Source: Macrostomum hystrix (taxonomy: Eukaryota > Animalia > Platyhelminthes). Taken from it: 64,000 nucleotides of DNA. The translations under genes and the position numbers were made by a program. The DNA is taken from the NCBI GenBank assembly GCA_950097015.1, contig CATNEN010000011.1:806001-870000 (forward strand), read 5' to 3'. Position 1 is the first letter of the stretch. Every line of letters begins with the position of its first letter. Positions 28,421-50,365 of this stretch are shown here, in pieces. Under the pieces are notes generated by a model, which was not told where the DNA came from, did no database searches, and saw only the letters and a program-made list of their open reading frames with translations.

Positions 28421-29928
28421 TGATTGATTGAGCATGTTACATTGCAGCCTTTTACATGGGGTCAAAGTATGCACAAAATATCTCGCCAAAAATTTACAAA
28501 AAATAAATGGAGCTTTATGCAATCAGATAGCAATAGCAATCAGTGATTAGTTTGTTGACTCTGCTGCCGTCTGTTTTGGTGATGGTGATGCCGGTTCTTC
28601 ATTAGTTCAAGCGTTGAACTCTTCCTATTTGCTGCGCGTCCGTGCGTTTCGACCATCTGGTAAAACTGGACCTTATTCTAAAATGAATAATGAGAAAAAG
28701 TAGTTGCATAAAGGTAAAAAGCTTTTAATTATAAAACAATTAATGGAAGAGTGATCTGTGACGAACAAGAAGTCATTACAATACAATTAAAATGGTTTAA
28801 GCAACGCGCAGAGAAAATTTATTTCCACACAAAATAAAGTTTCGATCAGCTTTTAATAACTGCCCATGTTAATCAAGTTCTATTTTTAATTGAATGGATT
28901 TTTATCGTAACTGCAGTGAAAAGTGATATGAAATAATTGGTTCAGCGCGCATTATATACCCTCCACGACTTCTCGCTAGCTCCTAAAATAAGTATTCAAG
29001 TTTTTTTTGTAATTACTTGTACTTTTTGTGAGCCGAGGGTTAGGGTCTTTAAATTCATTGACTAATTGCTAATTTAGCAGACGAAAAAACCTTAAACCTT
29101 AATACTTAATAAGGAATGCACTTATATGTCAGGGATGATTTCGAACGAGAGTAAACTTACCCGAAGATATTAGTATAGTTTCCTTTATACCTCATATTAT
29201 TATAATCAAAACGTGTCTACAAAAGAAGCTCATATAATCAGCTCGCCTTTTAGCTAAAATATAAAATTTAAGACTTTCCTTCGATCTTTTTCACAAAAAA
29301 ATTCTTACTTTTAGTTAAGGCACCCTTTTTGGATCATCAACAAATTGTTATTAGTTTTTGTCTTGCAGTCAGTAAGCTTTTTTATTTAAACACTTTTCTT
29401 ACCTAAAGGGCGACGTTGCTAAATTGAATCCAGATTTCTTTTTTTAATTGAAGACTCGTGAAAGTAACTATTCTTCGATCCTGACCTGGCTCTATACCTG
29501 ACGTATAAAGTATCAATAAAATTTACGATCTAACACTTTGTTTTCTCTTGTTTGCCTTTGCTTACTGAATTAAAGGAAAACATTATGATGCTACTTATAA
29601 GCAGTTAAGGAAAGGCAATTATTTAGGAATCACTAGACATCAAATTATATTTCATGACTAAAGCTTTTGCGCATTTCGCAACCGCCAGGATCGATTATTA
29701 AAACGGTAAGACATTAGAAATTAGACACCGATACGAACACAATATGCGAGTATGTTTATTTATTAACGATAAAGTCACATTAAAAGCGAAAATAAGACTG
29801 ATACAATAGGCAACAGAATATTTCAAAAAATAGTATAACATCATGTTTCGCACAAAATCCTACCCAGACTTGATGGTCCTTCATTAGTTGAATTTTTGGT
29901 ATTAGACTACAAATCTTGATTTTCTAAT

Positions 29929-32900
29929 TTACACAGCCAAAACATTCGCCGTAACTGACGAAGATGTGCGCCTAACTCCGTGCTGCATTGCGAGCTCCAG
30001 AGCTCTGGCGTGCCATTCCTTCTTTTTGGCCAGCCATTCCTTAATAAAGCAAATCACAAAAAGTAAAATATTATTGCAAAACTGAGCGAGGGCGAGAGGG
30101 TTTTTCGAAAGTTAATAAAACTTTATAGGTTAAAGTACCGTGCAGTGTCAATATATTTATTTATATATTTATATTTATATATATATTTCGATCATTATAT
30201 TCGAAGGGCTGCATGAGAGATTACTTATTACCTCAGCATCTTAAATTATAAAGAAGTAGGTTTCAACTATTCTTATGTAAAGTAAAATTCTTATAATGGC
30301 GATAAAGTAGCATAGATTAAATTTTTTAACTTATTTCCTTGTAAACAAAATCTAACTCTGTAGGTCGAATATCTACACAAAGTATCTACACGAATTGCAA
30401 GAGTTTTTATAAAAGTTTGTGCCGCTTTATACGATATAATAAGATTGTGTGAAAGATAACTGTCATAATTTGCTTAACTTAAACTAATAACATTACTATT
30501 TATTAAGATGTGATTTGCAATATCAATGTACTTTGTTCCAATGTACTTTGCAATTTTATGTGAATGCATGGCGTTTCTCCCCTAGTATTTTGTCTATATT
30601 TTAAAGTGACGACTTATCAAATGGAAAATCTATTGTGATTCTTAGTTAAGCAAGACTACAAAAACAAAAGCTCATCGGAAATTCACCTAGCAGTGCTGGC
30701 TTTTACCGTAGAAAAATGTTCTGATAATAAATTCGAAAAGACATGACCAAACCTACCTTGTATTCACGATCTTTCTTATGCATCTCCCGGCGTCTTCGAC
30801 AGGCCTATAAATATATTAGGTATGTTTTTGCATGTATAAAACGCTTCTAACTCTACTTTAAGTAGCGATGCATAAGTTTGGAAAAATAGTTCTGAAAAAG
30901 CGAATAATCAGCAAAGTCGCGTTTCTCACGTCGTAGTAAAGCCAGAATATGAAGATTACATGAGCCAGTACGTACAGGGCGGCGAAGCTGATGAAAACGT
31001 CCTTTTCAATCTTATTGACCATTTCCATTCTGCGAAGATGCTTCGAGCATGGCTCACCGGTTGAGTCTCCCTGGAAAATACAGTCACGGAGTGCAGAACC
31101 ACCGCTGCCGCCACTGGTCACAACCTTGGGATGAATCTGGGAAGTGCCGTTGTGTCTGCCAAGACTTGGCGGCTGGATCATTGTTACCACAGCGTGCCAG
31201 ATGCTTACAATGCAGAGAATGGCCAGAGACATTAAAACGTACTTATCCTGCAATATTTGAGAGTTCGTGCTTGTAGGGAATGAAAATACACCAGTTTTTA
31301 CACATTAATCGTAATCCACTTAGTAGGTGATTAAGTTTATGTAGTGCTCAAGAAAGAGTGTAATTTATGGGGACATGGGAGATTTGGCTATAAGGCACGT
31401 CGATGCATTCGTCTGAGCCAAGAAGCATCAATAAATTAATAATGACTTTTATCCTCCTCGCAGCTTATTCAAGTGTGCCAACCGGCTCCTGTCATGAATC
31501 TCTAATGTCCATGGGTCCGCATGCAGTCGTGCGTGCATTCGCAGTGTCATAGCAACGGAGGGAGGTCCCTTGGATACTTGAACTGCGAAAATTGCAGATT
31601 TTAATGCGAATTAAAAATCGTTTTTCATATTATTTTATCGTATCCAAGGTCAATCTGCGTTGCTATGTGCCAGAATTTCCGGGCTTTTTATTAATTGCGA
31701 GGCGACAATTTGGCTGTGGCGGGGCGGCGGTCGGGTCCTCGCTCTACGGCAGCAAACTAATCCGCAGCTTTAGCACTTCTCAATTAACAAAAAAGCCCGG
31801 AAAATCGTTAATGAACGAGTTTTTTTATCCTAAATCGTCCATTGGATCGGTAGCTTATTCTCCTCCCTGATCATTAAATTCGTTTATTTATCGGGCATTT
31901 GATAGGCGTTAATCGATACTAACTTTAGTGAGTTAAGTCTGGTCTAGACCAGGGGCTCATGCTTCAAATCTAAATGAGCTACATGTAGAAGTGTCACTCT
32001 ACAATGAGCCTCGGGGCGAGAAGTGGACAGGAGAAAGCCGGCGAGGTCCAGCTAACCGCGCACACACGAATTCCCGCCACGCACCAAATTTTATTCGCGG
32101 CTCTAGCAACGAAAAAAAACTGGCCCGATTAAATTCGCGAACTCAGCAGACTGCAGCCTCACCATGTAGGTCAGGTAGGATATTCTTGGCAGAGACTGGG
32201 CCACCACGTATTTAAAGGTGACGCTCGTTAACACCAAGGTGAAGCTAAGCCTTAGCCTGTGCTCGCATTTGTGCGGCTCAACAGCGAACGTGGCGAATGA
32301 AAGGCCCGAGATCATGAACTGCAATTAGCCGGAGCGGGTGGGGTGGCCAAGCATGAAGAGTTCTCTTCTAAAAAAGTTTCTCACCATGTAAGTTAAGTAG
32401 GAAATCTTCGGCAATGACTGATTGATGACAAACTTGAAGGCCACGGATGTTAGGAACAGAGTGAATGACAGCTGTAGGCGACTCTCGGGCTTGTCAGCGG
32501 CCACAGCGAAGGTGGCAAACGACAGGCCTGTGATGAAGAACTTCAATGGTGGCGCGATGGATTTAGAGCTGCTTGCTTTGCTAAAAGTTCTGCTTTTTAA
32601 CGCCTAAGTCGCACAATTTCGCTAAAATACCTTCGTTCATTAAGTGAAATTTATCCCTTATTATCAACTTTTTTGACACTTACTGAAGGGTCCATTTTCC
32701 TGACACTTCCAATAATACAACCTTGCTGATGCTGACACATTCCTTAACTATAGGGTCTTGTTGATGCTGACACATTCCTTAACTATAGGGTCTTGTTGAT
32801 GCTGACACATTCCTTAACTATAGGGTCCTGTTGATGCTGACACATTCCTTCACTATCGGGTCTTGTTGATGCTGACACCTTCCTTAACTATAGGGTCTTG

Positions 32901-35900
32901 TTGATGCTGACACCTTCCTTAACTATAGGTTCTTGTTGATGCTGACACATTCCTTAACTATAGGTTCTTGTTGATGCTGACACATTCCTTAACTATAGGG
33001 TCTTGTTGATGCTGACACATTCCTTAACTATAGGGTCTTGTTGATGCTGACACATTCCTTCACTATCGGGTCTTGTTGATGCTGACACATTCCTTCACTA
33101 TCGGGTCCTGTTGATGCTGACACATTCCTTAACTATAGGTTCTTGCTGATGCTGACACATTCCTTAACTATCGGGTCTTTCGAAACTTAGAAGACTTTTG
33201 TGTTCTAAAACACAAAAAATTGTTTTACATAAAAAAAGTTAGAAGCCTATGAAAAAGTATTCTTAATGACACAAATCTTTCTTTTAATGCCTTGAAAATG
33301 ACGATATAATTCTAAAACTTTTGTAATTCAGCTCTCAACAATTTTATTGCGTTTGCTTGGGTCGGCACAAAAAATTGATTGCTTGTTTAATAAAAAATTC
33401 AGAAATGGTTCATTGTGAAATAAAAGCAAAGGTTTCCTAGCTCTGCTATTCTGGTTTCTAGTCGAAAGGTCACACTCATTTAAGATTGGAAGAGAAATGC
33501 ATTTTAAAGTAAAATATTTGAATAACAAAAGCACGATATTCCCTGGGGATATCTGACTATAGAAAAAATGGCTTTAAGTACTTTTTAGCCATAGCCAGCT
33601 ATGTTAGAGATAAACATGTTTTCCCATTCCATCACACTCGCAGATTCGCCTCAGGGAAATCCCTGAGTGAAACTGAGAATTCCCAAGGAACTGGGCATTC
33701 CTTGGACGGATTTTTTAATCTCACTCGAGACATGTTCGAGATTCTAAAAATTGGAGGTCAGATTCCTAACAGGGTAATTCTAATTAAAAGGTTCCTAAGG
33801 GAGAGATTCCTAAGGGGGAGATTCCTAAGGGGGAGATTCCTAAGCAGGAGATTCCTGATAGGGGATTTCCTGATGGGGAGATTCCTGATAGGGAGATTGC
33901 TGAGGTGCAGATTTCTAACTGGGGAATCCTAATTGAAAGATTCCTAAGGGGGGAGATTTCTCAAGGGGGAGATTCCTAAGGGGGAGATTCCTGATGGGGA
34001 GATTCCTGATGGGGAGATTCCTGAGGCGGAGATTCATAACATGGGAGATTACTAAGTGGGAAGTTTCTCAAGGGGAAGATTTCTAAAGGGCAGATTCCCA
34101 ACGTGAATGTTTCTAATAGGGAGATTTCTAGGGTAGATTCCTAAGTGGAAGATTCTTAAGGGGCTACAAGGAAGATTCCTACGGGAGATTCCTAAGGGGG
34201 AGGTTCATAAGGCAGGGATCGAATGTTGGGAAATTTCTAAAGCGAAAATTCTTCAACATGAACATTCTCACTAATCTAAGGAAGTTGGTTAAAGGAAAAA
34301 CTCCGAAAAAGCGGTTCAAGGGATAAATTATCAAGATTAGATTCTTCTGGAAGAAGTCTTTTGGGATTTTATAGTCTCAGAAAAAAAGACTAGTCGATTG
34401 AATTAGAACTAGCGGGCAATAATTGGCAATTAATCGCTGTATTGACTAATTGATTATTTAGAAATGAGTAAAATGCTTCAGGTAAGAATGTAAAGTATAG
34501 AATAATTCCCAACCTGCTTTTCTACCGTGTGTGGTATGTGGCAACAACAGGAATAAAACCGCATCCCATCTGCTGGCCAAATGCTAAAATTGTTCAATCG
34601 ATTTATTTAGACAGAGAAGCAAATTCACAATTAATTAGCAGGCTCAGCGGGCCGCAAGTCCCGGGTCAGCACAAACAAAGCAGAGATGGATAAGACCTCT
34701 CTGCTGCTATGCTGTTTTGCACAATGGCCCATAATTCTCTGGGGCCGCTATGCGTAAAGTCAAGCCTGCCTCTCTTCCCCTATTGTTTGATATGCAGCAT
34801 GCAGTCAGAGTCTGCTAATGCCACGCCTGTCTGGGGGAAGGGCATACTAATTCCTAAATAAAACTGGAAATTACCGGTTCTATTAGCTTCAGTTAGCTTC
34901 TACTCAGATCTTCAGTTTTGCTAGACTCTACGCCAGCGGTTTCCGTCTACTCGATGAAAGCGAGAAACTTTTAGAGAAGTTTTCTGTTTATGTTAGACTC
35001 AAATGTTCACCAAGCTGTTAGACTCAAATGTTTACCAAGCTGTTAGACTCGAATGTTCACCAAGCCGTTAGACTCAAATGTTCACCAAGCTGTTAGATAC
35101 AGATGTTCACCTAGCTGTTAGACACAGATGTTCACCTAGCTGTTAGACACAGATGTTCACCTAGCTGTTAGACACAGATGTTCACCTAGCTGTTAGACAC
35201 AGATGTTCACCTAGCTGTTAGACACAGATGTTCACCTAGCTGTTAGACTCAAATGTTCACCTAGCTGTTAGACACAGATCTTCACCTAGCTGTTAGACAC
35301 TTATCTTCACCTAGCTGTTAGACACTTATCTTCACCCAGCTGTTAGATACAGATCTTCACCTAGCTGTTAGACACAGATGTTACGCTGAGATTGGCTGCT
35401 CACCATGATCAAGAAGACATTCCAATAGAAATATCCCGGTCTCCTTGCAGCCCTGCAGCGCACAGCAAGGCAAGGGTGGGACTTCATTGTGCTTGAAAAC
35501 TCCTGAGTCAAGGTGCGCTTCTCAACCTCAATGTGCTCATGAAGCCGCCATTCCTGCTGATCAACGAAGGTCTGAATATTGATTCCGCTCATTTCAGCCT
35601 CGTCTGGAATCAGCTCGATCTCGGTGTCTGGTCGCTCCGATGTGATTGTGATCGTCAGGTCCTGGTTAAGTGTGGTTTGCCATGAGCTCAATAATCGATT
35701 GTCCCATTCTACACATTCCAATGAGTCATTTATCCCATTCTAAACATTCAATGAGTCAATTGTCCCATTCTCAGCCTTCCAACGAGTCAGTTATCTCATT
35801 CTAAACCTTCGATTGGATCAATCATTGAATAGTTTCATGTATCGCATTAATAGCCTACCTGCACATCCAGCGGGAAATCGTTTAGCTCGAGAGTTTCTAA

Positions 35901-38900
35901 GAAAACGCCCTTTATACGACGCCGTTCAACAATGTACACGTCTGATGACAATGGATCATGCTGGCCAACAATCCAGGTGGCCTCCTTTGTCTCATTCAGA
36001 ATGTTGTCGATGTAGATGAGCGGGTTCCAGTACTTCTCCAGGTCCACCGTCTTCAGCTCCTGATAAAAGTACATGGCAGTAACTTGATAATTTGTTAAAT
36101 TTGCATAACAGATTACGGAATACAATGCTAGCTATTCTAGCCTCAGTGATGAAGGAATAGAATGGATTGCTAGTCTAGCCTCAATGGATGAAGGAATAGA
36201 ATGGATTGCTAGTCTAGCCTCAATGGATGAAGGAATAGAATGGATTGCTAGTCTAGCCTCAATGGATGAAGGAATAGAATGGATTGCTAGTCTAGCCTCA
36301 ATGGATGAAGGAATAGAATGGATTGCTAGTCTAGCCTCAATGGATGAAGGAATAGAATGGATTGCTAGTCTAGCCTCAATGGATGAAGGAATAGAATGGA
36401 TTGCTAGTCTAGCCTCAATGGATGAAGGAATAGAATGGATTGCTAGTCTAGCCTCAGTGGATGAAGGAATAGAAGGATTGCTAGTCTAGCCTCAATCGAG
36501 AAAGAAATAGAATAGATAGCTAGTCTTGCCTCAGTGGATGAAGGAATAGAATGGATTGCTAGTCTAGTCTGTGTCCCAGACACACGAGTATCGATAAAAA
36601 TCTGTCGAGGTAAAATATGTTTTTAATGCGTGCTCAGTTGAGAAATTTTGATTGATTAATTACTTTTATTTTAAAGGTTTCCAGAATACAGAAAAGTGAC
36701 AGGCTGGTGATAACGCATTCAAGGGAGATATAAAATGGCTATGATATTTATATGGAGCATGAGACATCTGATCTGCTGTTTGGATGAGAAAACTGCTGCT
36801 GCTGCTGCTGCTGCTGCCTGGGAAAATATTACATTAGTTGGCCTTTTTCGTCCAACATAACTAACCTTTGGAGGATTATCACCCTGGATCGATGCATTTC
36901 AAATTAGACGGGGTATTAGGCTAAGATTTTTAGGCTTCACATTTTTATATACGCCGTATAATGCCTCAGCTCAGTTGTAGAGTTTAGGAACTCAATATTG
37001 CTTCTTTAGTTTATTTTAGACAACTAACTATAACTATTTGAAACATAAACAGGATTTATATAAATTTATGAGTTTACATCGTAAGTGAAAATTGATTAAC
37101 TGGGAATTAATGTTAATTAATAGAAATATTCTATTAATTCCCGAGAAAAGTTAAAAGCATTTCTTAGAACTTTTACTTTTTCAAATATTTTCTTTAAGTG
37201 ATCCCAAGTTTTTGAAAGAGATTCCAAGAAGTTATGTACTTGTGATTGTCTGTTCTACAAAAGCCGCTAAGACTTCAAGATTGTCTAATTCTTTGTCGAA
37301 TATGCGATAGAAGGTTCCTAAATAATATGCAAATTGATTCTAAAAAGCGCACGCTAATTATTCGAAACGAATATTAACACTAGTCTGAGACTATTACTAG
37401 ACAGCTTCTATATTATATATAACATACAAGAATACAAACCAACACTTGAGTACGCGCATATTCTTAAATTACTCATAAATATTCCGTAGAAAATAATTTA
37501 TATTAGGAATAAAACCGTAAAAATGAACTATTGTCTCGCACTTCATCAATCGGTGCTTGGATTTTATTTCTGCCTGGAATTCTTCAGGGAATTTATGGGA
37601 TTTTGTGGATGCATCAATAGATAATTCTTTAGTAGTGGTAAGCTAAGATATATTATATACGTTCGACCAATGGATTGCTGATCCTTCCAAATTTTCTACA
37701 TATGGATCCAAAGTTCAGAAATTCTCAGTTTTTTTCTACATGTTTTATTCATTCATTTTCTCCCTTACCGAACATAGTGGAGAGATGAATTAAAGTAATT
37801 CAATTTACAAAGGCCGGAAATTTTCCGGCTTTAACCAAATTAGATTACAACTCGTAATGGGCCAAAAGCCGGCAAGTTTACACAGTCGCCGAAAGCGGTT
37901 TTTATAACTCTCTGAAATTTACGCGAACCGGTTGTAGCGATCACGTTATGTGACGGAGTGAAGAAGGAGAAAGAATTGAACAGAAAAAAATCCTTTAAAA
38001 CCCGCTGGAAAGTCACGTCTATCGCGCGCGACACTTTCTAATCACTCCCGATGCCAGTATAGGAGTTAAGGGAATATGAATACTTTTCTGGCGACTGCAG
38101 GGATATTCTGGGGACACTTTGGATGGGTAAGGAGGGTGTGGGTGCTTGGAAGATAGATAGATACCTCACGACCATCCTACAAACTCAGCGTAGAACTCTC
38201 ACAATACCCCACCCCATGCACCACGCAGTCTGTTACCGCGCGCGCCAAATTCTCTCCCATTTTCTCCTCGTTCTGCGTCTAGCAATGTATGCATACTAAA
38301 TTCTGAGAAATCCGACTGTGCCATCACGAGGGGGAGAAAGTTTTTGGGACAAGATTTACGCGCACTAACACGCATACTCAATATAATCCTTCTGAAATAA
38401 AACTGCTTGATTTTGTTGAACTGCTCAAATAAAGCATAATACTTGGCTGAAGGTCGCGAGTTCTAATGTCAAAGTGCATCTTTTAGATTCTCTTGGCAAT
38501 ATATATTATAAAATAAACAATTTTAGCATGAAAGTTCACCTGTTATTTACATTTTTTGCTTTATGTAAAGTTTCCTTTGATATTTAATAATGCATTAGCA
38601 ATGTCACTCCCAACAAAAGCACTCTTTGTCCATTTCATTTCCCTGCTACTGGGCTCCAATGGGGAAGAGGAAACTGGGGAAATTTTTGGGATTGGGTCGG
38701 TGTGAGGATACAATATGCGGGGGGGGGACGTTTTTGGCCCGCAATTATCACACCTTGTGCAGTTTTTTTCCACTTCTTTTTTCTTTCTTTTCATTTCCAA
38801 CCCAACTGGGGGCATACGAGAGGCAGAGAATTGTAAATTATGCACTAAATGCTAAGCTGAAGAGTTGCAGCCGGAATACAAACAGAAGAAATCTAGTTCC

Positions 38901-41900
38901 CAGGAGCTGACGCCTATTTCCGTGCTCCATATAAAGTGCTAGGCCTGCAGCTTTTGGAACATAGCTTGGGGTGCAGGGAAATGGGATGAATTTAGATGGG
39001 CACTAACTATAGATCTCTCATGTTTTCACCTTTATCGGCTAAATTAACTAGCCTCATAATATGCTGTTAAATACAGCTTACAGACTGCCCTATGATATAG
39101 TCACTCAACTCAGGGACAAATGACAAATGCTGGCATGTTATACCTATAACTGCTCAAATATATTAGCTTTCTAATTGCTAATCTCAACTCAAAATCAATA
39201 ATCAGGATAGGTTATAAATATAATTCATGTAAAATCTAGCCTCACTGGAGAAAGGAGTAGAATGGATTGCTAGTCTAGCCTCACTGGAGAAAGGAATAGA
39301 ATGGATTGCTAGTCTAGCCTCTGTGGATGAAGGAATAGAATGGATTGCTAGTCTAGCCTCTGTGGATGAAGGAATGGAATGGATTGCTAGTCTAGCCTCT
39401 GTGGATGAAGGAATAGAATGGATTGCTAGTCTAGCCGTCTAGCCTCAGTGATGAAGGAATAGAATGGATTGCTAGTCTAGCCTCAGTGATGAAGGAATAG
39501 AATGGATTGCTAGTCTAGCCTCAATGGATGAAGGAATAGAATGGATTGCTAGTCTAGCCTCAGTGATGAAGGAATAGAATGGATTGCTAGTCTAGCCTCA
39601 ATGGATGAAGGAATAGAATGGATTGCTAGTCTAGCCTCAGTGGATGAAGGAATAGAATGGATTGCTAGTCTAGCCTCAGTGGATGAAGGAATAGAATGGA
39701 TTGCTAGTCTAGCCTCTGTGGATGAAGGAATAGAATGGATTGCTAGTCTAGCCTCTGTGGATGAAGGAATAGAATTGATTGCTAGTCTAGCCTCTGTGGA
39801 TGAATGAATAGAATGGATTGCTAGTCTAGCCTCTGTGGATGAAGGAATAGAATGGATTGCTAGTCTAGCCTCTGTGGATGAAGGAGTAGAATGGATTGCT
39901 AGTCTAGCCTCAATGGATGAAGGAGTAGAATGGATTGCTAGTCTAGCCTCATTGGATGAAGGAATAGAATGGATTGCTAGTCTAGCCTCAATGGATGAAG
40001 GAATAGAATGGATTGCTAGTCTAGCCTCACTGGAGAAAGGAATAGAATGGATTGCTAGTCTAGTCTCAGTGGATGAAGGAATAGAATGGATTGCTAGTCT
40101 AGTCTCAGTGGATGAAGGAATAGAATGGATTGCTAGTCTAGCCTCTGTGGATGAAGGAATAGAATGGATTGCTAGTCTAGCCTCAGTGGATGAAGGAATA
40201 GAATGGATTGCTAGTCTAGTCTCAGTGGAGAAAGGAATAGAATGGATTGCTAGTCTAGCCTCACTGGAGAAAGGAATAGAATGGATTGCTAGTCTAGTCT
40301 CAGTGGATGAAGGAATAGAATGGATTGCTAGTCTAGTCTCAGTGGATGAAGGAATAGAATGGATTGCTAGTCTAGCCTCAGTGGATGAAGGAATAGAATG
40401 GATTGCTAGTCTAGCCTCAGTGGATGAAGGAATAGAATGGATTGCTAGTCTAGCCTCAGTGGATGAAGGAATAGAATGGATTGCTAGTCTAGCCTCAGTG
40501 GATGAAGGAATAGAATGGATTGCTAGTCTAGCCTCAGTGGATGAAGGAATAGAATGGATTGCTAGTCTAGTCTCAGTGGAGAAAGGAATAGAATGGATTG
40601 CTAGTCTAGCCTCACTGGAGAAAGGAATAGAATGGATTGCTAGTCTAGTCTCAGTGGATGAAGGAATAGAATGGATTGCTAGTCTAGCCTCAGTGGATGA
40701 AGGAATAGAATGGATTGCTAGTCTAGCCTCAGTGGATGAAGGAATAGAATGGATTGCTAGTCTAGCCTCAGTGGATGAAGGAATAGAATGGATTGCTAGT
40801 CTAGCCTCAGTGGATGAAGGAATAGAATGGATTGCTAGTCTAGTCTCACTGGAGAAAGGAATAGAATGGATTGCTAGTCTAGCCTCTGTGGATGAAGGAA
40901 TAGAATGGATTGCTAGTCTAGCCTCTGTGGATGAAGGAATAGAATGGATTGCTAGTCTAGCCTCAGTGGATGAAGGAATAGAATGGATTGCTAGTCTAGC
41001 CTCAGTGGATGAAGGAATAGAATGGATTGCTAGTCTAGCCTCAGTGGATGAAGGAATAGAATGGATTGCTAGTCTAGCCTCAGTGGATGAAGGAATAGAA
41101 TGGATTGCTAGTCTAGTCTCAGTGAATGAAGGAATAGAATGGATTGCTAGTCTAGCCTCAGTGGATGAAGGAATAGAATGGATTGCTAGTCTAGCCTCAG
41201 TGGATGAAGGAATAGAATGGATTGCTAGTCTAGCCTCAGTGGATGAAGGAATAGAATGGATTGCTAGTCTAGCCTCAGTGGATGAAGGAATAGAATGGAT
41301 TGCTAGTCTAGCCTCAGTGGATGAAGGAATAGAATGGATTGCTAGTCTAGCCTCAGTGGATGAAGGAATAGAATGGATTGCTAGTCTAGTCTCAGTGAAT
41401 GAAGGAATAGAATGGATTGCTAGTCTAGCCTCAGTGGATGAAGGAATAGAATGGATTGCTAGTCTAGCCTCAGTGGATGAAGGAATAGAATGGATTGCTA
41501 GTCTAGTCTCACTGGATGAAGGAATAGAATGGATTGCTAGTCTAGCCTCAGTGGATGAAGGAATAGAATGGATTGCTAGTCTAGCCTCAATGGATGAAGG
41601 AATAGAATGGATTGCTAGTCTTGCCTCAATGGATGAAGGAGCAGAACGGATTGCTAGTTCAGCCAACTGCTGCTCATGGCCCGAAGCCAACTCACCTCCG
41701 GACTTCTGCCTTCAAGCAACGGCTCCTTCCACTTGGCCTGAATAAATGCGTCGGCATGGTACAGCTCCTTGAGGGTGTCGATTTCGCCGATTTTAAGAAA
41801 GACGACACGAATTTCGACGACCACCTGCAGTTTGCGGGGTTGGGAAAGTGAGATTAGAGAGTGGGATCTGAGTTTCTAGTGAGATTAGAGAGTGGGATCT

Positions 41901-44197
41901 CAGTTTCTAGTGAGATTAGAGAGTGGGATCTGAGTTTCTAGTGAGATTAGAGAGTGGGATCTCAGTTTCTAGTGAGATTAGAGAGTGGGATCTCAGTTTC
42001 TAGTGAGATTAGAGAGTGGGATCTCAGTTTCTAGTGAGATTAGAGAGTGGGATCTGAGTTTCTAGTGAGATTAGAGAGTGGGATCTGAGTTTCTAGTGAG
42101 ATTAGAGAGTGGGATCTCAGTTTCTAGTGAGATTAGAGAGTGGGATCTCAGTTTCTAGTGAGATTAGAGAGTGGGATCTGAGTTTCTAGTGAGATTAGAG
42201 AGTGGGATCTGAGTTTCTAGTGAGATTAGAGAGTGGGATCTCAGTTTCTAGTGAGATTAGAGAGTGGGATCTGAGTTTCTAGTGAGATTAGAGAGTGGGA
42301 TCTCAGTTTCTAGTGAGATTAGAGAGTGGGATCTGAGTTTCTAGTGAGATTAGAGAGTGGGATCTGAGTTTCTAGTGAGATTAGAGAGTGGGATCTGAGT
42401 TTCTAGTGAGATTAGAGAGTGGGATCTGAGTTTCTAGTGAGATTAGAGAGTGGGATCTCAGTTTCTAGTGAGATTAGAGAGTGGGATCTCAGTTTCTAGT
42501 GAGATTAGAGAGTGGGATCTCAGTTTCTAGTGAGATTAGAGAGTGGGATCTCAGTTTCTAGTGAGATTAGAGAGTGGGATCTGAGTTTCTAGTGAGATTA
42601 GAGAGTGGGATCTCAGTTTCTAGTGAGATTAGAGAGTGGGATCTCAGTTTCTAGTGAGATTAGAGAGTGGGATCTCAGTTTCTAGTGAGATTTTCCTTCC
42701 TACGAACATTTTAGTTAATGTGGATCGTATAGTCCCGTAAAATTAGTTACAGTCATTCATTTTAATGCCTGGTATGATTATAATTCATAAGATAATAGTG
42801 AGTTATAGCGGATTGGTAAAAGGTCATTTAGAAAAACCTAGTTGTCGACTTTTTTCTCGACATCAGAAAATAAGATAGAAAGTACAATATTTAGTAATTT
42901 CCGTCAGATTATCAGAAAAATGTCTGTATTAACAATCAGTTAATTCTGCTTTATCAGCTTCGATACATAGGCTTGAATATAAGTAATGAAATGCTGTTGC
43001 ACTGATCACGAAAGTGCTGTTCCTGTTCTGTTACTGTTTTATCTTTTTTTCCAGCAAATTTCATAAATGAATTTACCATCTGAAAACTGGCATTCTGCAT
43101 GCAACTAATTAGATTTGTTTGTTATTGTTAAAAGACATTCCGGTTTGCTTAGTTTAGTAGCTTCGCATTATTGTTGACTTGAAATGTATAATGAGCTGTT
43201 CAATTAAAAGGTTTGCACAATGACCTTACGAGTATATGTGCTCCTGATTTTCTAAAAAACAACGAAATCGTCCCTTAATAAACTATTCTCTCCCCTGACA
43301 TCCTCTCCCCTGAAATCCTCTCCCCTGACATCCTCTCCCCTGACATCCTCTTCCCTGACATCCTCTCCCCTGACATTATCTCCCCTGACATCCTCTCCCC
43401 TGACATCCTCTCCCCTGACATCCTCTTCCCTGACATCCTCTTCCCTGACATTATCTCCCCTGACATCCTCTCCCCTGACATCCTCTCCCCTGACATTCTC
43501 TTCCCTGACATCCTCTCCCCTAACATCCTCACCCCTGACATCCTCTCCCCTGACATCCTCTTCCCTGACATCCTCTTACCTGAAATCCTCTTCCCTGACA
43601 TCCTCTTCCCTGACATTATCTCCCCTGGCATCCTCTTCCCTGACATCCTCTCCCCTGACATTATCTCCCATGACATCCTCACCCCTGACATCCTCTCCCC
43701 TGACATTATCTCCCATGACATCCTCTCCCCTGACATCCTCTCTCCTGACATCCTCTCCTGTCCGACCAGCTGCAGACCTTCTCTGATCGAATCCGGCAGC
43801 GCTCATCCCTCTTCAGCGCGCTGCTCTTGTAATTGACCTGACCGGCCGAGGTTCCCCGTCGCCGGTTTCTGGTGCGGGTCTGCTGGAGCGCCACGCTGGT
43901 GCTGTCGTTAATTGAGTCGCGCAGAGTCTCCAGAGCTTCAATCAATCGTCTGGTTGGATTCAGTGTGCTCAGGATGTCCTCAGCGGCAGCTTGGCCGATG
44001 TCCATCGAATCAGCTTCAGCGTTGGCAGCCGCTGGATTATCTTCGACGCCTTCGACTGATTGATTTTCAGCTGATGTCGGTTGATAATTAACACCTGCGC
44101 CTTTGAGTTTTGTGCTCAAGCACTCGGTCGAATTGAAATCTGCGCTGTTGTTAGAGAAGCAGTCATCGTCCGTGTCGACGGCGTGGTAGGCTGCGTC
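29929..44197 (-). CDS. Cys-less (Pro-loop) pentameric ligand-gated ion channel subunit; first coding exon not located
   Basis: All exons are phase 0 and GT-AG: 44197-43778, 41824-41696, 36059-35859, 35661-35404, [32540-32385 or 32318-32163], 31247-30930, 30804-30757, 30039-29929 (TAA). Motifs: RVVFLKIGEIDTLKELYHADAFIQAKWKEP, YWNPLIYIDN, LELNDFPLDVQDL (no Cys), RRPGYFYWNVFL (pre-M1/M1), RLQLSFTLFLTSVAF...LPKISYLTYMDKY (M2-M3), and M4 VFISFAALYVLAHVIFIFWLY. Confidence 0.9.
32163..32318 (-). CDS. pLGIC mutually exclusive M1-end/M2 exon B
   Basis: ttgcag|TTC...ATG|gtgag; 156 nt; FMISGLSFATFAVEPHKCEHRLRLSFTLVLTSVTFKYVVAQSLPRISYLTYM. Confidence 0.9.
32385..32540 (-). CDS. pLGIC mutually exclusive M1-end/M2 exon A
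   Basis: ttgaag|TTC...ATG|gtgag; 156 nt; FFITGLSFATFAVAADKPESRLQLSFTLFLTSVAFKFVINQSLPKISYLTYM. Confidence 0.9.
32725..33178. repeat. 35-bp minisatellite (about 13 copies)
   Basis: Unit TTGATGCTGACACATTCCTTAACTATAGGGTCTTG; recurs at 32761 and 32796. Confidence 0.96.
33790..34200. repeat. Degenerate repeat of about 15 bp (GGGAGATTCCTAAGG)
   Basis: Repeated GGAGATTCC cores; explains ORF 33702..33932. Confidence 0.85.
34990..35380. repeat. 25-bp minisatellite (about 15 copies)
   Basis: Unit GTTAGACACAGATGTTCACCTAGCT, ending about 25 nt from the splice donor at 35403. Confidence 0.96.
36130..36570. repeat. 39-bp satellite, array 1
   Basis: Unit GATGAAGGAATAGAATGGATTGCTAGTCTAGCCTCARTG; 13-aa periodicity in ORF 36184..36489. 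Confidence 0.97.
39230..41660. repeat. 39-bp satellite, array 2 (about 60 copies)
   Basis: Same unit as 36130-36570; source of ORFs 39549..41690 and 39835..41745. Confidence 0.98.
41849..42690. repeat. 31-bp minisatellite (about 27 copies)
   Basis: Unit GTGAGATTAGAGAGTGGGATCT(C/G)AGTTTCTA, starting about 25 nt from the acceptor at 41825. Confidence 0.97.
43285..43760. repeat. 15-bp minisatellite
   Basis: Unit TCCTCTCCCCTGACA; source of ORFs 43275..43751 and 43576..43806. Confidence 0.96.
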
Positions 44198-44239: not shown

Positions 44240-44906
44240 AAATGAAAGGAATAGAATGCATTGCTAGTCTAGCCTCAGTGGATGAAGGAGTAGAATGGAT
44301 TGCTAGTCTAGTCTCAGTGGATGAAGGAATAGAATGGATTGCTAGTCTAGCCTCAGTGGATGAAGGAATAGAATGGATTGCTAGTCTAGCCTCAGTGGAT
44401 GAAGGAGTAGAATGGATTGCTAGTCTAGTCTCAGTGGATGAAGGAATAGAATGGATTGCTAGTCTAGCCTCAGTGGATGAAGGAATAGAATGGATTGCTA
44501 GTCTAGCCTCAGTGATTGAAGGAGTAGAATGGATTGCTAGTCTAGCCTCAATGGATGAAGGAATAGAATGGATTGCTAGCCTAGGCTCTCTCTTGGTGGA
44601 AGGAGTAGAATGGATTGCTAGCCTAGGCTCTCTCTTGGTGGAAGGAATAGAATGGATTGCTAGCCTAGGCTCTCTCTTGGTGGAAGGAGTAGAATGGATT
44701 GCTAGCCTAGGCTCTCTCTTGGTGGAAGGAATAGAATGGATTGCTAGCCTAGGCTCTCTCTTGGTGGAAGGAGTAGAATGGATTGCTAGCCTAGGCTCTC
44801 TCTTGGTGGAAGGAGTAGAATGGATTGCTAGCCTAGGCTCTCTCTTGGTGGAAGGAATAGAATGGATTGCTAGCCTAGGCTCTCTCTTGGTGGAAGGAGT
44901 AGAATG
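44240..44906. repeat. 39-bp satellite, array 3, switching to a 42-bp variant
   Basis: 39-bp unit up to about 44570, then GAAGG(A/AG)TAGAATGGATTGCTAGCCTAGGCTCTCTCTTGGTG-type units (14-aa period in ORF 44242..44907). Confidence 0.95.
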
Positions 44907-45679
44907 AAATGGTTTGTCAACAGAGAGTCTACTTTTTAGTTAAAAGCGATGCAGGACTATAATTTTTTAAATAATTGTTTTTTGTTTCCAGTTTTTAAGT
45001 GTTTTTCAAAAAAATAATAAAATGAATAAGGCTCGCTCTAAAAAAACACAACACAAAAGTACATAATATTGTATCCATGCTGCATAGCAATGTCACGCCG
45101 GGTTTTTTTTATCGTCGCCTAGTAAAAACTTACTCCGGTAGCTGTACAGTATCGTCTTCGTCCTTTCTTCTTTAAATTGACCAATTCCTGAGCTGAGGTC
45201 ATAGCTAATCAGCAGCCTATTGTTTATAATTTTTGCAGTTGCACGAGTATAAGCTGTTTCCTATCCTCGAAGTGATGCTATGTGAATTCTGCTCTTAGAT
45301 TTTTATATCTTTGCCAGTCTCGATTATGCACGCTCTGTGGGGGTGGCTATTCACCAGTGTGACTGCTCAAAGTGAAATAGGACGAGATGAGGCATAACGG
45401 AGGCTGGGAGTCCACCTCAATTAGGCCCTGGGAGCCAATGGTAGGAATCTATTGGGTTAGTATGAGTTGTTCTCCAGTTTTGCTTAAGCTCGATCAGAAT
45501 TTTTTATTTCTAATAGTCATTACAACTGCTGGGCAATAATAGTTATATAGTTTAAATAAAATAAACAGACAAATATTTTCCTTCCAAAAAATCTATTGGA
45601 AATATTTACTTTAAACTAAAAAAATGCGGAAAATAACTCACTTACTTTAAGCTACTATGAGTAGTCCAGGGAGAATTCT

Positions 45680-48600
45680 TCAGAAGACTGAAGAAGTCTG
45701 AAGAAGACTGAAGAAGTCTGTAGAAGTCTGAAGAAGACTGAAGAAGACTGAAGAAGTCTGTAGAAGACTGAAGAAGTCTGTAGAAGTCTGTAGAAGACTG
45801 AAGAAGACTGAAGAAGTCTGTAGAAGTCTGTAGAAGTCTGAAGAAGACTTAAGAAGTTTGAAGAAGTTTGAAGAAGTCTGAAGAAGACTGAAGAAGTTTA
45901 AAGAAGACTGAAGAAGTCTGTAGAAGTTTGAAGAAGTTTGAAGAAGTCTGAAGAAGACTGAAGAAGTCTGTAGAAGTCTGAAGAAGACTGAAGAATTCTG
46001 AAGAAGACTGAAGAAGACTGAAGAAGACTGAAGCAGTCTGAAGAATACTGAAGAAGTCTGTAGAAGTCTGAAGAATTCTGAAGAAGACTGAAGAAGTCTG
46101 TAGAAGACTGAAGAAGACTTAAGAAGTCTGAAGAAGTTTGAAGAAGTCTGTAGAAGTCTGAAGAAGTCTGAAGAAGACTTAAGAAGTCTGAAGAAGTTTG
46201 AAGAAGTCTGAAGAAGTCTCAAGAAGACTGAAGAAGTTTAAAGAAGACAGAAAAAGTTTGAAGAAGTTTGAAGAAGTCTGAAGAAGTTTGAAGAAGTCTG
46301 AAGAAGTCTGAAGAAGACTGAAGAAGTTTGAAGAAGTCTGTAGAAGACTGAAGAATTCTGAAGAAGACTGAAGAAGACTGAAGAAGACTGAAGAAGTCTG
46401 AAGAATACTGAAGAAGTCTGTAGAAGTCTGAAGAATTCTGAAGAAGACTAAAGAAGTCTGTAGAAGACTGAAGAAGACTTAAGAAGTCTGAAGAAGTTTG
46501 AAGAAGTCTGTAGAAGTCTGAAGAAGTCTGAAGAAGACTTAAGAAGTCTGAAGAAGTTTGAAGAAGTCTGAAGAAGTCTCAAGAAGACTGAAGAAGACTG
46601 AAGAAGTCTCAAGAAGACTGAAGAAGACTGAAGAAAAATGAAGAAGACTGAAGAAGACTGAAGAAGACGAAGAAGAAGTCTGAAGAAGACTGAAGAAGAC
46701 TGAAGAAGTCTGTAGAAGACTGAAGAAGTCTGTAGAAGTCTGAAGAAGACTGAAGAAGACTGAAGAAGTCTGTAGAAAACTGAAGAAGTCTGTAGAAGTC
46801 TGTAGAAGACTGAAGAAGTTTGAAGAAGTCTGAAGAAGTTTGAAGAAGTCTGAAGAAGTCTGAAGAAGACTGAAGAAGTTTGAAGAAGTCTGTAGAAGAC
46901 TGAAGAATTCTGAAGAAGACTGAAGAAGACTGAAGAAGACTGAAGAAGTCTGAAGAATACTGAAGAAGTCTGTAGAAGTCTGAAGAATTCTGAAGAAGAC
47001 TAAAGAAGTCTGTAGAAGACTGAAGAAGACTTAAGAAGTCTGAAGAAGTTTGAAGAAGTCTGTAGAAGTCTGAAGAAGTCTGAAGAAGACTTAAGAAGTC
47101 TGAAGAAGTTTGAAGAAGTCTGAAGAAGTCTCAAGAAGACTGAAGAAGACTGAAGAAGTCTCAAGAAGACTGAAGAAGACTGAAGAAAAATGAAGAAGAC
47201 TGAAGAAGACTGAAGAAGACGAAGAAGAAGTCTGAAGAAGACTGAAGAAGACTGAAGAAGTCTGTAGAAGACTGAAGAAGTCTGTAGAAGTCTGAAGAAG
47301 ACTGAAGAAGACTGAAGAAGTCTGTAGAAAACTGAAGAAGTCTGTAGAAGTCTGTAGAAGACTGAAGAAGACTGAAGAAGTCTGTAGAAGTCTGTAGAAG
47401 TCTGAAGAAGACTTAAGAAGTTTGAAGAAGTTTGAAGAAGTTTGAAGAAGTCTGAAGAATACTGAAGAAGTTTGAAGAAGTCTGAAGAAGTCTGAAGAAG
47501 ACTGAAGAAGTTTAAAGAAGACTGAAGAAGTTTGAAGAAGTTTGAAGAAGTCTGAAGAAGACTGAAGAAGTCTGTAGAAGTCTGAAGAAGACTGAAGAAG
47601 TTTGAAGAAGTCTGTAGAAGACTGAAGAATTCTGAAGAAGACTGAAGAAGACTGAAGAAGTCTGAAGAATACTGAAGAAGTCTGTAGAAGTCTGAAGAAT
47701 TCTGAAGAAGACTGAAGAAGTCTGTAGAAGACTGAAGAAGACTTAAGAAGTCTGAAGAAGTTTGAAGAAGTCTGTAGAAGACTGAAGAAGACTTAGGAAG
47801 TCTGAAGAAGTTTGAAGAAGTCTGTAGAAGTCTGAAGAAGTCTGAAGAAGACTTAAGAAGTCTGAAGAAGTTTGAAGAAGTCTGAAGAAGTCTCAAGAAG
47901 ACTGAAGAAGACTGAAGAAGTCTCAAGAAGACTGAAGAAGACTGAAGAAAAATGAAGAAGACTGAAGAAGACTGAAGAAGACGAAGAAGAAGTCTGAAGA
48001 AGACTGAAGAAGCCTGAAGAAGACTGAAGAAGTCTCAAGAAGACTGAAGAAGACTGAAGAAAAATGAAGAAGACTGAAGAAGACTGAAGAAGACGAAGAA
48101 GAAGTCTGAAGAAGACTGAAGAAGACTGAAGAAGTTTAAAGAAGACAGAAAAAGTTTGAAGAAGTTTGAAGAAGTCTGAAGAAGTTTGAAGAAGTCTGAA
48201 GAAGTCTGAAGAAGACTGAAGAAGTTTGAAGAAGTCTGTAGAAGACTGAAGAATTCTGAAGAAGACTGAAGAAGACTGAAGAAGACTGAAGAAGTCTGAA
48301 GAATACTGAAGAAGTCTGTAGAAGTCTGAAGAATTCTGAAGAAGACTAAAGAAGTCTGTAGAAGACTGAAGAAGACTTAAGAAGTCTGAAGAAGTTTGAA
48401 GAAGTCTGTAGAAGTCTGAAGAAGTCTGAAGAAGACTTAAGAAGTCTGAAGAAGTTTGAAGAAGTCTGAAGAAGTCTCAAGAAGACTGAAGAAGACTGAA
48501 GAAGTCTCAAGAAGACTGAAGAAGACTGAAGAAAAATGAAGAAGACTGAAGAAGACTGAAGAAGACGAAGAAGAAGTCTGAAGAAGACTGAAGAAGACTG

Positions 48601-50365
48601 AAGAAGTCTGTAGAAGACTGAAGAAGTCTGTAGAAGTCTGAAGAAGACTGAAGAAGACTGAAGAAGTCTGTAGAAAACTGAAGAAGTCTGTAGAAGTCTG
48701 TAGAAGACTGAAGAAGTTTGAAGAAGTCTGAAGAAGTTTGAAGAAGTCTGAAGAAGTCTGAAGAAGACTGAAGAAGTTTGAAGAAGTCTGTAGAAGACTG
48801 AAGAATTCTGAAGAAGACTGAAGAAGACTGAAGAAGACTGAAGAAGTCTGAAGAATACTGAAGAAGTCTGTAGAAGTCTGAAGAATTCTGAAGAAGACTA
48901 AAGAAGTCTGTAGAAGACTGAAGAAGACTTAAGAAGTCTGAAGAAGTTTGAAGAAGTCTGTAGAAGTCTGAAGAAGTCTGAAGAAGACTTAAGAAGTCTG
49001 AAGAAGTTTGAAGAAGTCTGAAGAAGTCTCAAGAAGACTGAAGAAGACTGAAGAAGTCTCAAGAAGACTGAAGAAGACTGAAGAAAAATGAAGAAGACTG
49101 AAGAAGACTGAAGAAGACGAAGAAGAAGTCTGAAGAAGACTGAAGAAGACTGAAGAAGTCTGTAGAAGACTGAAGAAGTCTGTAGAAGTCTGAAGAAGAC
49201 TGAAGAAGACTGAAGAAGTCTGTAGAAAACTGAAGAAGTCTGTAGAAGTCTGTAGAAGACTGAAGAAGACTGAAGAAGTCTGTAGAAGTCTGTAGAAGTC
49301 TGAAGAAGACTTAAGAAGTTTGAAGAAGTTTGAAGAAGTTTGAAGAAGTCTGAAGAATACTGAAGAAGTTTGAAGAAGTCTGAAGAAGTCTGAAGAAGAC
49401 TGAAGAAGTTTAAAGAAGACTGAAGAAGTTTGAAGAAGTTTGAAGAAGTCTGAAGAAGACTGAAGAAGTCTGTAGAAGTCTGAAGAAGACTGAAGAAGTT
49501 TGAAGAAGTCTGTAGAAGACTGAAGAATTCTGAAGAAGACTGAAGAAGACTGAAGAAGTCTGAAGAATACTGAAGAAGTCTGTAGAAGTCTGAAGAATTC
49601 TGAAGAAGACTGAAGAAGTCTGTAGAAGACTGAAGAAGACTTAAGAAGTCTGAAGAAGTTTGAAGAAGTCTGTAGAAGACTGAAGAAGACTTAGGAAGTC
49701 TGAAGAAGTTTGAAGAAGTCTGTAGAAGTCTGAAGAAGTCTGAAGAAGACTTAAGAAGTCTGAAGAAGTTTGAAGAAGTCTGAAGAAGTCTCAAGAAGAC
49801 TGAAGAAGACTGAAGAAGTCTCAAGAAGACTGAAGAAGACTGAAGAAAAATGAAGAAGACTGAAGAAGACTGAAGAAGACGAAGAAGAAGTCTGAAGAAG
49901 ACTGAAGAAGCCTGAAGAAGACTGAAGAAGTCTCAAGAAGACTGAAGAAGACTGAAGAAAAATGAAGAAGACTGAAGAAGACTGAAGAAGACGAAGAAGA
50001 AGTCTGAAGAAGACTGAAGAAGACTGAAGAAGACTGAAGAAGACTGAAGAAGTCTGTAGAAGACTGAAGAAGACTTAAGAAGTCTGAAGAAGTTTGAAGA
50101 AGTCTGTAGAAGTCTGAAGAAGTCTGAAGAAGACTTAAGAAGTCTGAAGAAGTTTGAAGAAGTCTGTAGAACACTGTAGAAGTGTGAAGAAGTCTGAAGA
50201 AGACTGAAGAAGTCTCAAGAAGACTGAAGAAGACTGAAGAAGTTTCAAGAAGACTGAAGAAGACTGAAGAAAAATGAAGAAGACTGAAGAAGACTGAAGA
50301 AGACGAAGAAGAAGTCTGAAGAAGACTGAAGAAAAATGAAGAAGATTGAAAAAGACTGAAGAGAA
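45680..50365. repeat. 10-bp satellite (CTGAAGAAG[A/T]), about 4.7 kb, with a 1898-bp higher-order duplication
   Basis: Identical ORF translations at 47000..47926 and 48898..49824; the rare variant GACAGAAAAAG occurs at 46246 and 48144. Confidence 0.97.

Follow-up and report, generated by a model that had tools for sequence, protein, structure and literature searches.

The 64-kb window analysed here (the whole 64,000-nt stretch, positions 806,001 to 870,000 of contig CATNEN010000011.1 of Macrostomum hystrix) contains on its minus strand a gene that, judged from its sequence, is a Cys-less (Pro-loop) pentameric ligand-gated ion channel (pLGIC). The reconstructed protein has nine coding exon positions and about 578 amino acids (Table 1). 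At the sixth position lie two exons, A and B, each of which encodes the end of the transmembrane segment M1, the M1-M2 loop, M2 and the M2-M3 loop. A and B are probably tandemly duplicated, mutually exclusive exons of this Macrostomum gene, and we infer that their products differ in permeation. Between exons Ec and Ed, each mRNA would carry one of the two, giving two subunits that are otherwise identical.

Hydrophobic segments matching M1, M3 and M4 are found in the protein. The Pro-loop is recognisable where exon Eb ends in LELNDFPLDVQ and exon Ec begins with DLTITI, with no Cys 6 to 8 residues on either side of FPLD. Assignment of single exons by Pfam was abandoned because it gave weak matches only, including one to Neur_chan_LBD on exon Ea, and full-length orthologues from Macrostomum lignano were used instead. 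The orthologue P0002 has a Neur_chan_LBD match of 31.9 bits, above the cut-off of 26, and a Neur_chan_memb match of 21.1 bits, below the cut-off of 28.1. In a phmmer search of the PDB this protein matches ELIC (expectation value 7e-15) and GABA-A gamma2 (2e-14) over residues 205-476, from the ligand-binding domain to M3. A DNA search of a phage collection with the region gave no match. A 'Cys-less' clade of ligand-gated ion channels has been published for flatworms and Spiralia (PMC9874803, PMC4795631), and for its flatworm members no ligand or recorded current is known. An earlier reading of this stretch, made from the letters alone (the sequence-only reading), had called the gene an orphan; this holds in that no ligand is known, but the family itself was already described as the Cys-less clade (PMC9874803, PMC4795631). 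It is an orphan channel family absent from humans and a proposed anthelmintic target (PMC9874803).

Exons A and B are each 156 nt (52 codons) long and phase 0-0, with AG before and GTGAG after. They are identical at 38/52 residues (73%) and 99/156 nucleotides, and the tblastn match of A against B within the window (E about 1e-21) is far beyond chance similarity. No third copy of the M2 exon is found within the 64-kb window. The coordinates and sequence agree with the sequence-only reading, which had described tandem 156-nt phase-0 exons 66 nt apart, running from the end of M1 through the M2-M3 loop; its flanking junction coordinates, 35404 and 31247, are likewise correct by exon reconstruction and RNA joints.

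When a full-length orthologue is aligned with GABA-A gamma2 and ELIC using HMMER, the conserved Arg falls at 0' and LPxxSY at 22'-27', and the prime numbering of the earlier reading is therefore correct. Exon A has Glu at -2', Ser at -1', Gln at 2', Thr at 6', Leu at 9', Ala at 13' and Phe at 16', and exon B has Glu, His, Arg, Thr, Leu, Thr and Tyr at the same positions. Arg 0', Thr 6', Leu 9' and the pair Leu 22'-Pro 23', followed by ISY, are present in both exons. The differences reported previously (-1' S/H, 2' Q/R, 13' A/T, 19' N/A and the loop sequence, AADKP in A versus EPHKC in B) and the unchanged residues at 6' and 9' are all as first written. To these can be added 8' F/V, 16' F/Y, 18' I/V and 24' K/R, as well as differences at the end of M1 (F/M and T/S) and in the M1-M2 loop. 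Three of the 14 differing positions (2', 13' and 16') line the pore.

The use of the two exons can be followed in spliced contigs from two public runs (X1 and X2) of unrecorded type, at a depth of 2-9. Five GT-AG introns of the gene are skipped in these contigs, which therefore derive from RNA. The joint from Ec to A (35404>32540) is seen in X1, the joint from A to Ed that skips B (32385>31247) in X1 and X2, and the joint from B to Ed (32163>31247) in X1, with the A-derived and B-derived joints both landing at 31247. A contig from X2 runs through the whole of B and stops matching the genome precisely at the B acceptor, which must therefore be in use. Both alternative M2 exons occur in spliced RNA, as their joints to Ed show. 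The junctions by which the sequence-only reading proposed to follow exon choice are accordingly seen in part: the three above are present, and the A>B joint (32385>32318) is, like an Ec>Ed joint, listed in neither run, at a depth at which contigs drop rare forms. In M. lignano, three GenBank models (PAA66589, PAA70238 and PAA65257) run from Ec to B to Ed, and the GenBank annotation of this species was built from RNA-seq with StringTie/TACO (PMC5730564). Among protein fragments from RNA assemblies, none from Macrostomum bridges the junction upstream of B.

Two M. lignano loci (L004 and L005) likewise contain both exons undamaged and in this order, with an A-B intron of 39 nt. Amino acid identity to M. 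lignano is 96% for exon A and 98% for exon B; exon Ec is 100% identical to the M. lignano proteins, the constitutive parts are 96% identical, and exon DNA is 76-84% identical to the two loci, a divergence that marks the window as a different Macrostomum species or a diverged homeologue. Between A and B the nonsynonymous divergence (dN) is 0.25 and the synonymous divergence (dS) is saturated, with 24 of the 38 codons for identical residues differing synonymously. It follows that the exons duplicated long ago and that both are under constraint. Conservation of the pair in a related genome, named earlier as a check on the proposal, is thus found in both M. lignano loci, with the exons under purifying selection.

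Flukes and tapeworms have the two pore types in two separate paralogous genes, and many neodermatan species have one gene of each. A-type M2 genes are present in Fasciola, S. japonicum (KAH8850228), E. granulosus, Opisthorchis felineus and Paragonimus, and B-type M2 genes in S. mansoni (A0A5K4EMP5), Opisthorchis, Echinococcus and Hymenolepis. Each of the three fluke genomic loci examined contains a single M2 exon, either A-type or B-type. All B-type exons, including that of Macrostomum, group as one clade (support 100/100) when a tree is made from the 52-aa segment. When trees are built from the constitutive parts, three groups (Macrostomum, neodermatan A genes and neodermatan B genes) fall together in one flatworm clade (99/97) as a trichotomy; approximately unbiased (AU) tests reject none of its three resolutions. 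Outside the flatworms the sequence QNRLQLSFTL, which has Gln at 2', does not vary in molluscs, annelids, nemerteans, rotifers and one brachiopod, and on this comparison type B, with Arg at 2', is flatworm-specific. Glu at -2' (in PE[SN]R, CEHR or AELR) is characteristic of the flatworm clade; the other spiralians listed nearly all have Gln at -2' (PQNR), with PENR in one Tubulanus and one Mytilus, and His in two. One and the same lineage may have given rise to both the Glu ring at -2' and Arg at 2'.

The simplest history for these genes would begin with exon duplication. The M2 exon would have duplicated in an early flatworm, copy B gaining Arg 2', Thr 13' and Tyr 16'; Macrostomum would have retained both exons in one gene, and the neodermatan gene would have duplicated, each copy keeping one exon. 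A history in which the gene duplicated first, and Macrostomum then underwent exon transfer and gene loss, is a possible alternative that needs more steps. Since the two pore types are separate genes in flukes and tapeworms, splicing in Macrostomum would do the job of two genes there, and the locus may serve as a clear-cut case in which duplicating an exon and duplicating a gene are interchangeable. Two matches considered as relics of a lost exon were rejected as not significant. One is a 10-aa match, LRLSFTQVLT, in Fasciola gigantica (L001, 25009-25038; BLAST E about 2), which lies on the gene strand between the single A-type M2 exon, from which it is 1.7 kb downstream, and the M3 exon, and the other is a stop-containing match in Opisthorchis (E 0.5).

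The lining of exon A from 2' to 16' is that of ELIC, a cation channel, and of the spiralian consensus. Isoform A would keep this ancestral, ELIC-like lining (Q2', T6', L9', A13', F16'), and isoform B would have a flatworm-specific one (R2', T13', Y16'). Schistosome members of the clade also have Glu at -2', which has been linked to cation selectivity (PMC9874803). Placed at i+4, one helical turn above Glu -2', Arg 2' would share the pore-facing side of the helix with it and would cancel or invert the negative charge at the pore's narrow end. The B pore would be expected to have a lower permeability to cations or divalent ions or a lower conductance, or to desensitise differently, with graded effects in A/B heteromers. 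Because the ligand-binding domain, M3 and M4 would be shared by the isoforms and the M2 cassette alone would differ, the gene offers a natural minimal pore swap, and it indicates which schistosome subunits experimenters should compare or co-express.

It is also possible, although considerably less so, that the exons are truly alternative and that the selected difference is one of gating or desensitisation, of assembly or partner choice, or of lipid or modulator sensitivity. Such a difference would act through the end of M1, the M1-M2 loop, 8', 13', 16' and the M2-M3 loop. The small share of pore-lining positions among those that differ is consistent with this explanation, as is the location of the desensitisation gate of pLGICs in the -2' to 2' region, and the neodermatan types are separate subunit genes, as expected of heteromer partners. 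However, the most radical and clade-defining change is the charge at the pore-facing 2' position, where Gln is otherwise invariant across phyla, and this weighs against the explanation.

Several points weigh against mutually exclusive exons of different permeation. Only 15 unplaced letters lie beyond the B acceptor in the X2 contig, and no listed joint places the exon upstream of B in the window species. At a depth of 2-9, in contigs that drop rare forms, some mRNA with both exons or with neither may have escaped. Two UniProt models from M. lignano, P0001 (A0A1I8GSY0) and P0151 (A0A1I8GBW9), join A directly to B, and show that the 39-nt intron of this species looks spliceable to a gene finder. 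Given the microintrons of flatworms, a short intron need not block co-inclusion. Finally, the predicted effect of Arg 2' on permeation is inferred purely from the residues.

Some of these points would suit an arrangement in which B is an optional cassette after A, such that transcripts are Ec-A-Ed or Ec-A-B-Ed, the latter having a duplicated M2 and being perhaps non-functional or regulatory. For B, the window species shows only the joint to Ed and the 15 unplaced letters beyond its acceptor, co-inclusion keeps the reading frame, flatworms are able to splice introns of 39-66 nt, and the UniProt models contain the join. This arrangement is nonetheless distinctly unlikely. The three RNA-based GenBank models from M. 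lignano splice Ec directly to B, and the A>B joint is listed in neither run; B is under strong purifying selection, and a B-type M2 is the sole M2 of its gene in neodermatans. A five-helix subunit would, in addition, misorient M3 and M4. P0001 and P0151 are weak evidence, because the gene prediction behind them is an older one and their sequences stop part-way through B, and their join of A to B, with M2 duplicated, is probably a prediction artefact; the present analysis flags such models as wrong in the databases. Four further M. lignano models (P0003, P0008, P0019 and P0217) contain translated intron or frameshifts, which are probably annotation errors at the locus. That one exon is a little-used relic, appearing in RNA as splicing noise, is very improbable: the low RNA depth does not allow its use to be quantified, but neither reading frame is broken in the window species or in two M. 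lignano loci, although synonymous divergence is saturated, a maintained neodermatan gene exists as orthologue of each type, and each exon is present in assembled spliced contigs or gene models.

If A and B are mutually exclusive, as preferred here, the choice between them must be enforced. The coding exons are 69, 420, 129, 201, 258, 156, 318, 48 and 135 nt (plus stop) long, every one divisible by three, so that every intron is phase 0 and any single-exon skip stays in frame. The same is true of the inclusion of both A and B, as had been pointed out from the sequence. Co-inclusion and double skipping being both in frame, nonsense-mediated decay cannot police the exon choice. The sequence-only reading had suggested enforcement by the short A-B intron, and lengths of 66 nt, and 39 nt in M. 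lignano, do fit the steric model (PMC5740500). The claim is weakened by the fact that microintrons of <75 nt are abundant and spliced in flatworms, M. lignano included (PMC6530080), so that intron length alone does not block splicing from A to B. The very short intron is therefore a candidate enforcer of exclusion, and a branch point near the A donor, for example GCAAC within the 39-nt M. lignano intron, is a speculative addition to it.

Two other mechanisms of exclusion were considered and rejected. Incompatibility between spliceosomes, with U12-type introns, is not supported, as the four relevant donors are GTGAG[A/G/C], the acceptors are CAG or AAG, and no donor reads [AG]TATCCTT. For docking and selector pairing of RNA, blastn of the window against the M. 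lignano introns matches exons only, with no conserved intronic elements, and pairing of the A-B intron with its flanking introns has duplex energies within those of dinucleotide-preserving shuffles at all three loci. No conserved intronic sequence or above-chance complementarity is therefore available for such pairing, by a crude test that weak or structured elements could escape.

The remaining exons were reconstructed from several sources. Exon 1 is based on tblastn with the M. lignano N-terminus and on reading of the sequence, and its RNA joint to exon 2 is not seen. Exon 2 was placed by tblastn against the M. lignano proteins P0001 and P0002 (E 5e-39), with an AG acceptor and a GT donor read in the sequence. 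Loose ends of RNA contigs connect Ea to Eb, where the end at 36061 matches the end of Ea, and Ee to Ef, where the end at 30757 matches 28677.

Table 1. Coding exons of the channel gene and repeat arrays around it, in gene order (positions are those of the 64-kb window)
Feature	Position	Strand	Length	Remarks
10-nt unit array	45682-50362		4.7 kb, 466 copies	just upstream of gene; strong GC and AT skew
Coding exon 1	45134..45202	minus	23 aa	ATG start, begins MTSAQELVNLKKKGRRR; no signal peptide; donor GTAAGT
39-nt minisatellite	44246-44906			exon 1-exon 2 intron
Coding exon 2	43778..44197	minus	140 aa	hydrophilic N-terminal extension before ligand-binding domain
15-nt array	43288-43758			exon 2-Ea intron; begins about 20 nt past exon 2 donor
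31-nt array	41847-42692			exon 2-Ea intron
Exon Ea	41696..41824	minus	43 aa	beta1-beta2 of ligand-binding domain; GEIDT motif
39-nt minisatellite	39235-41658			Ea-Eb intron
39-nt minisatellite	36117-36567			Ea-Eb intron
Exon Eb	35859..36059	minus	67 aa	ligand-binding domain to Cys-less Pro-loop; RNA joint 35858/35660 in both runs
Exon Ec	35404..35661	minus	86 aa	beta7-beta10, pre-M1, start of M1; donor at 35403
Exon A	32385..32540	minus	52 aa	alternative M2 exon
A-B intron	32319..32384	minus	66 nt	GTGAGA...TTGCAG; C-rich tract before B, common to M. lignano
Exon B	32163..32318	minus	52 aa	alternative M2 exon, same segment as A
Exon Ed	30930..31247	minus	106 aa	M3, short loop, M4; RNA joint 30929/30804 onward
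Exon Ee	30757..30804	minus	16 aa	basic post-M4 motif ACRRRREMHKKDREYK; joint in both RNA runs
Exon Ef (last coding exon)	28540..28677	minus	45 aa + TGA	basic His/Gln-rich tail; matches M. lignano P0286

The 5' half of the gene is embedded in satellite DNA. The 39-nt minisatellite, which has a 42/78-nt variant, occupies a large part of the 5.6-kb Ea-Eb intron and is found again in the intron between exons 1 and 2; on both strands it gives rise to spurious open reading frames, of up to 713 aa. At one edge of this minisatellite (36013-36200) the depth of RNA contigs is about 100x that over the gene, and the repeat is therefore dispersed or separately transcribed.

In the window protein, 163 hydrophilic residues precede beta1, and M4 is followed by the motif DACRRRREMHKKDREYK and then by the basic tail, 62 aa in all. 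The N-terminal extension is of 150-280 residues in most A-type paralogues and of 390-675 residues before the ligand-binding domain in the Schistosoma B-type proteins P0006, P0175 and P0177, where it is also hydrophilic. Among 107 Met-initiated spiralian members of the Cys-less family, a hydrophobic stretch before beta1 is present in only 2, a signal peptide is not seen in the other 105, and a poly-basic motif directly after M4 is present in 69. The combination of no signal peptide, no disulphide and a basic tail suggests an N-in/C-in topology, in which the ligand-binding domain would be cytosolic. It is conceivable, although doubtful, that these proteins are inside-out pLGICs gated from within the cell, with exon choice (or paralogue choice in the parasites) setting a Gln/Arg ring and selectivity, and with A/B heteromers tuning it. 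If this were true, the heteromers would tune permeation much as the GluA2 Q/R site does. No paper was found in the literature that proposes a cytosolic ligand-binding domain for the Cys-less family.

At the Q/R site of GluA2, A-to-I editing of one codon places Gln or Arg at a pore-lining ring, in the pore loop of a tetrameric ionotropic glutamate receptor. The flatworm exon pair would resemble this site in that one gene offers Gln or Arg post-transcriptionally and heteromers could be tuned by their stoichiometry, but the fold is unrelated, and the choice is one of exons, in which 13 further residues change along with the Q/R site. The earlier comparison of the pair with AMPA receptor Q/R editing can be kept as a functional analogy, whereas it does not extend to mechanism or fold. 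As regards splicing, the adjacent exons and very short intervening intron are like those of mutually exclusive exons governed by steric interference, such as exons 2 and 3 of alpha-tropomyosin, a class that accounts for 9% of human clusters of mutually exclusive exons (PMC5740500). The threshold distance from donor to branch point, about 50 nt, comes, however, from mammals, and flatworms splice introns of about 37 nt (PMC6530080).

The closest relatives by family are the Cys-less channels Smp_336620, Smp_334630 and Smp_135040 of S. mansoni and gabrg1/gabrg2 of planarians (PMC9874803; PMC4795631), with which the window gene groups in trees and shares the absence of Cys-loop cysteines, the retained FPxD and Glu at -2'. 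The papers on this clade describe separate genes and are silent on alternative M2 exons, on Arg or Gln at 2' and on the absent signal peptide (PMC9874803, PMC4795631). ELIC, the pLGIC of Erwinia (PDB 2vl0, 8d67), is the best PDB match by sequence, and the lining of exon A is identical to that of ELIC at 2', 6', 9', 13' and 16'. ELIC is, however, a bacterial protein that faces the periplasm and has a signal peptide, with no exon structure and no Arg variant.

The sequence-only reading knew of no description of such an arrangement, but this does not stand, because mutually exclusive exons that change the second transmembrane segment (TM2) are already known as exons 8a, 8b and 8c of the nicotinic acetylcholine receptor (nAChR) alpha6 of insects, in Drosophila, Tribolium, Apis and Bombyx (PMC2064938, PMC1919356). 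Both systems have tandem pLGIC exons, mutually exclusive in insects and probably so here, that replace TM2 residues and stem from an ancient duplication. In insects that duplication is about 300 My old, usage is regulated, and one variant replaces a conserved Glu implicated in conductance. Orthology to alpha6 was considered and rejected, as the window gene is without the Cys-loop and GEK and clusters with spiralian Cys-less channels, so that the resemblance is one of mechanism only. The insect receptor is a cationic Cys-loop nAChR with three variants and no described Gln/Arg switch at 2', whereas the window gene is Cys-less and has two. The duplications are independent and in different phyla, and the flatworm pair has a two-gene counterpart in related classes. 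No paper was found that describes mutually exclusive M2 exons in the Cys-less clade or in flatworms; the instance is new, and its kind is already known from insects.

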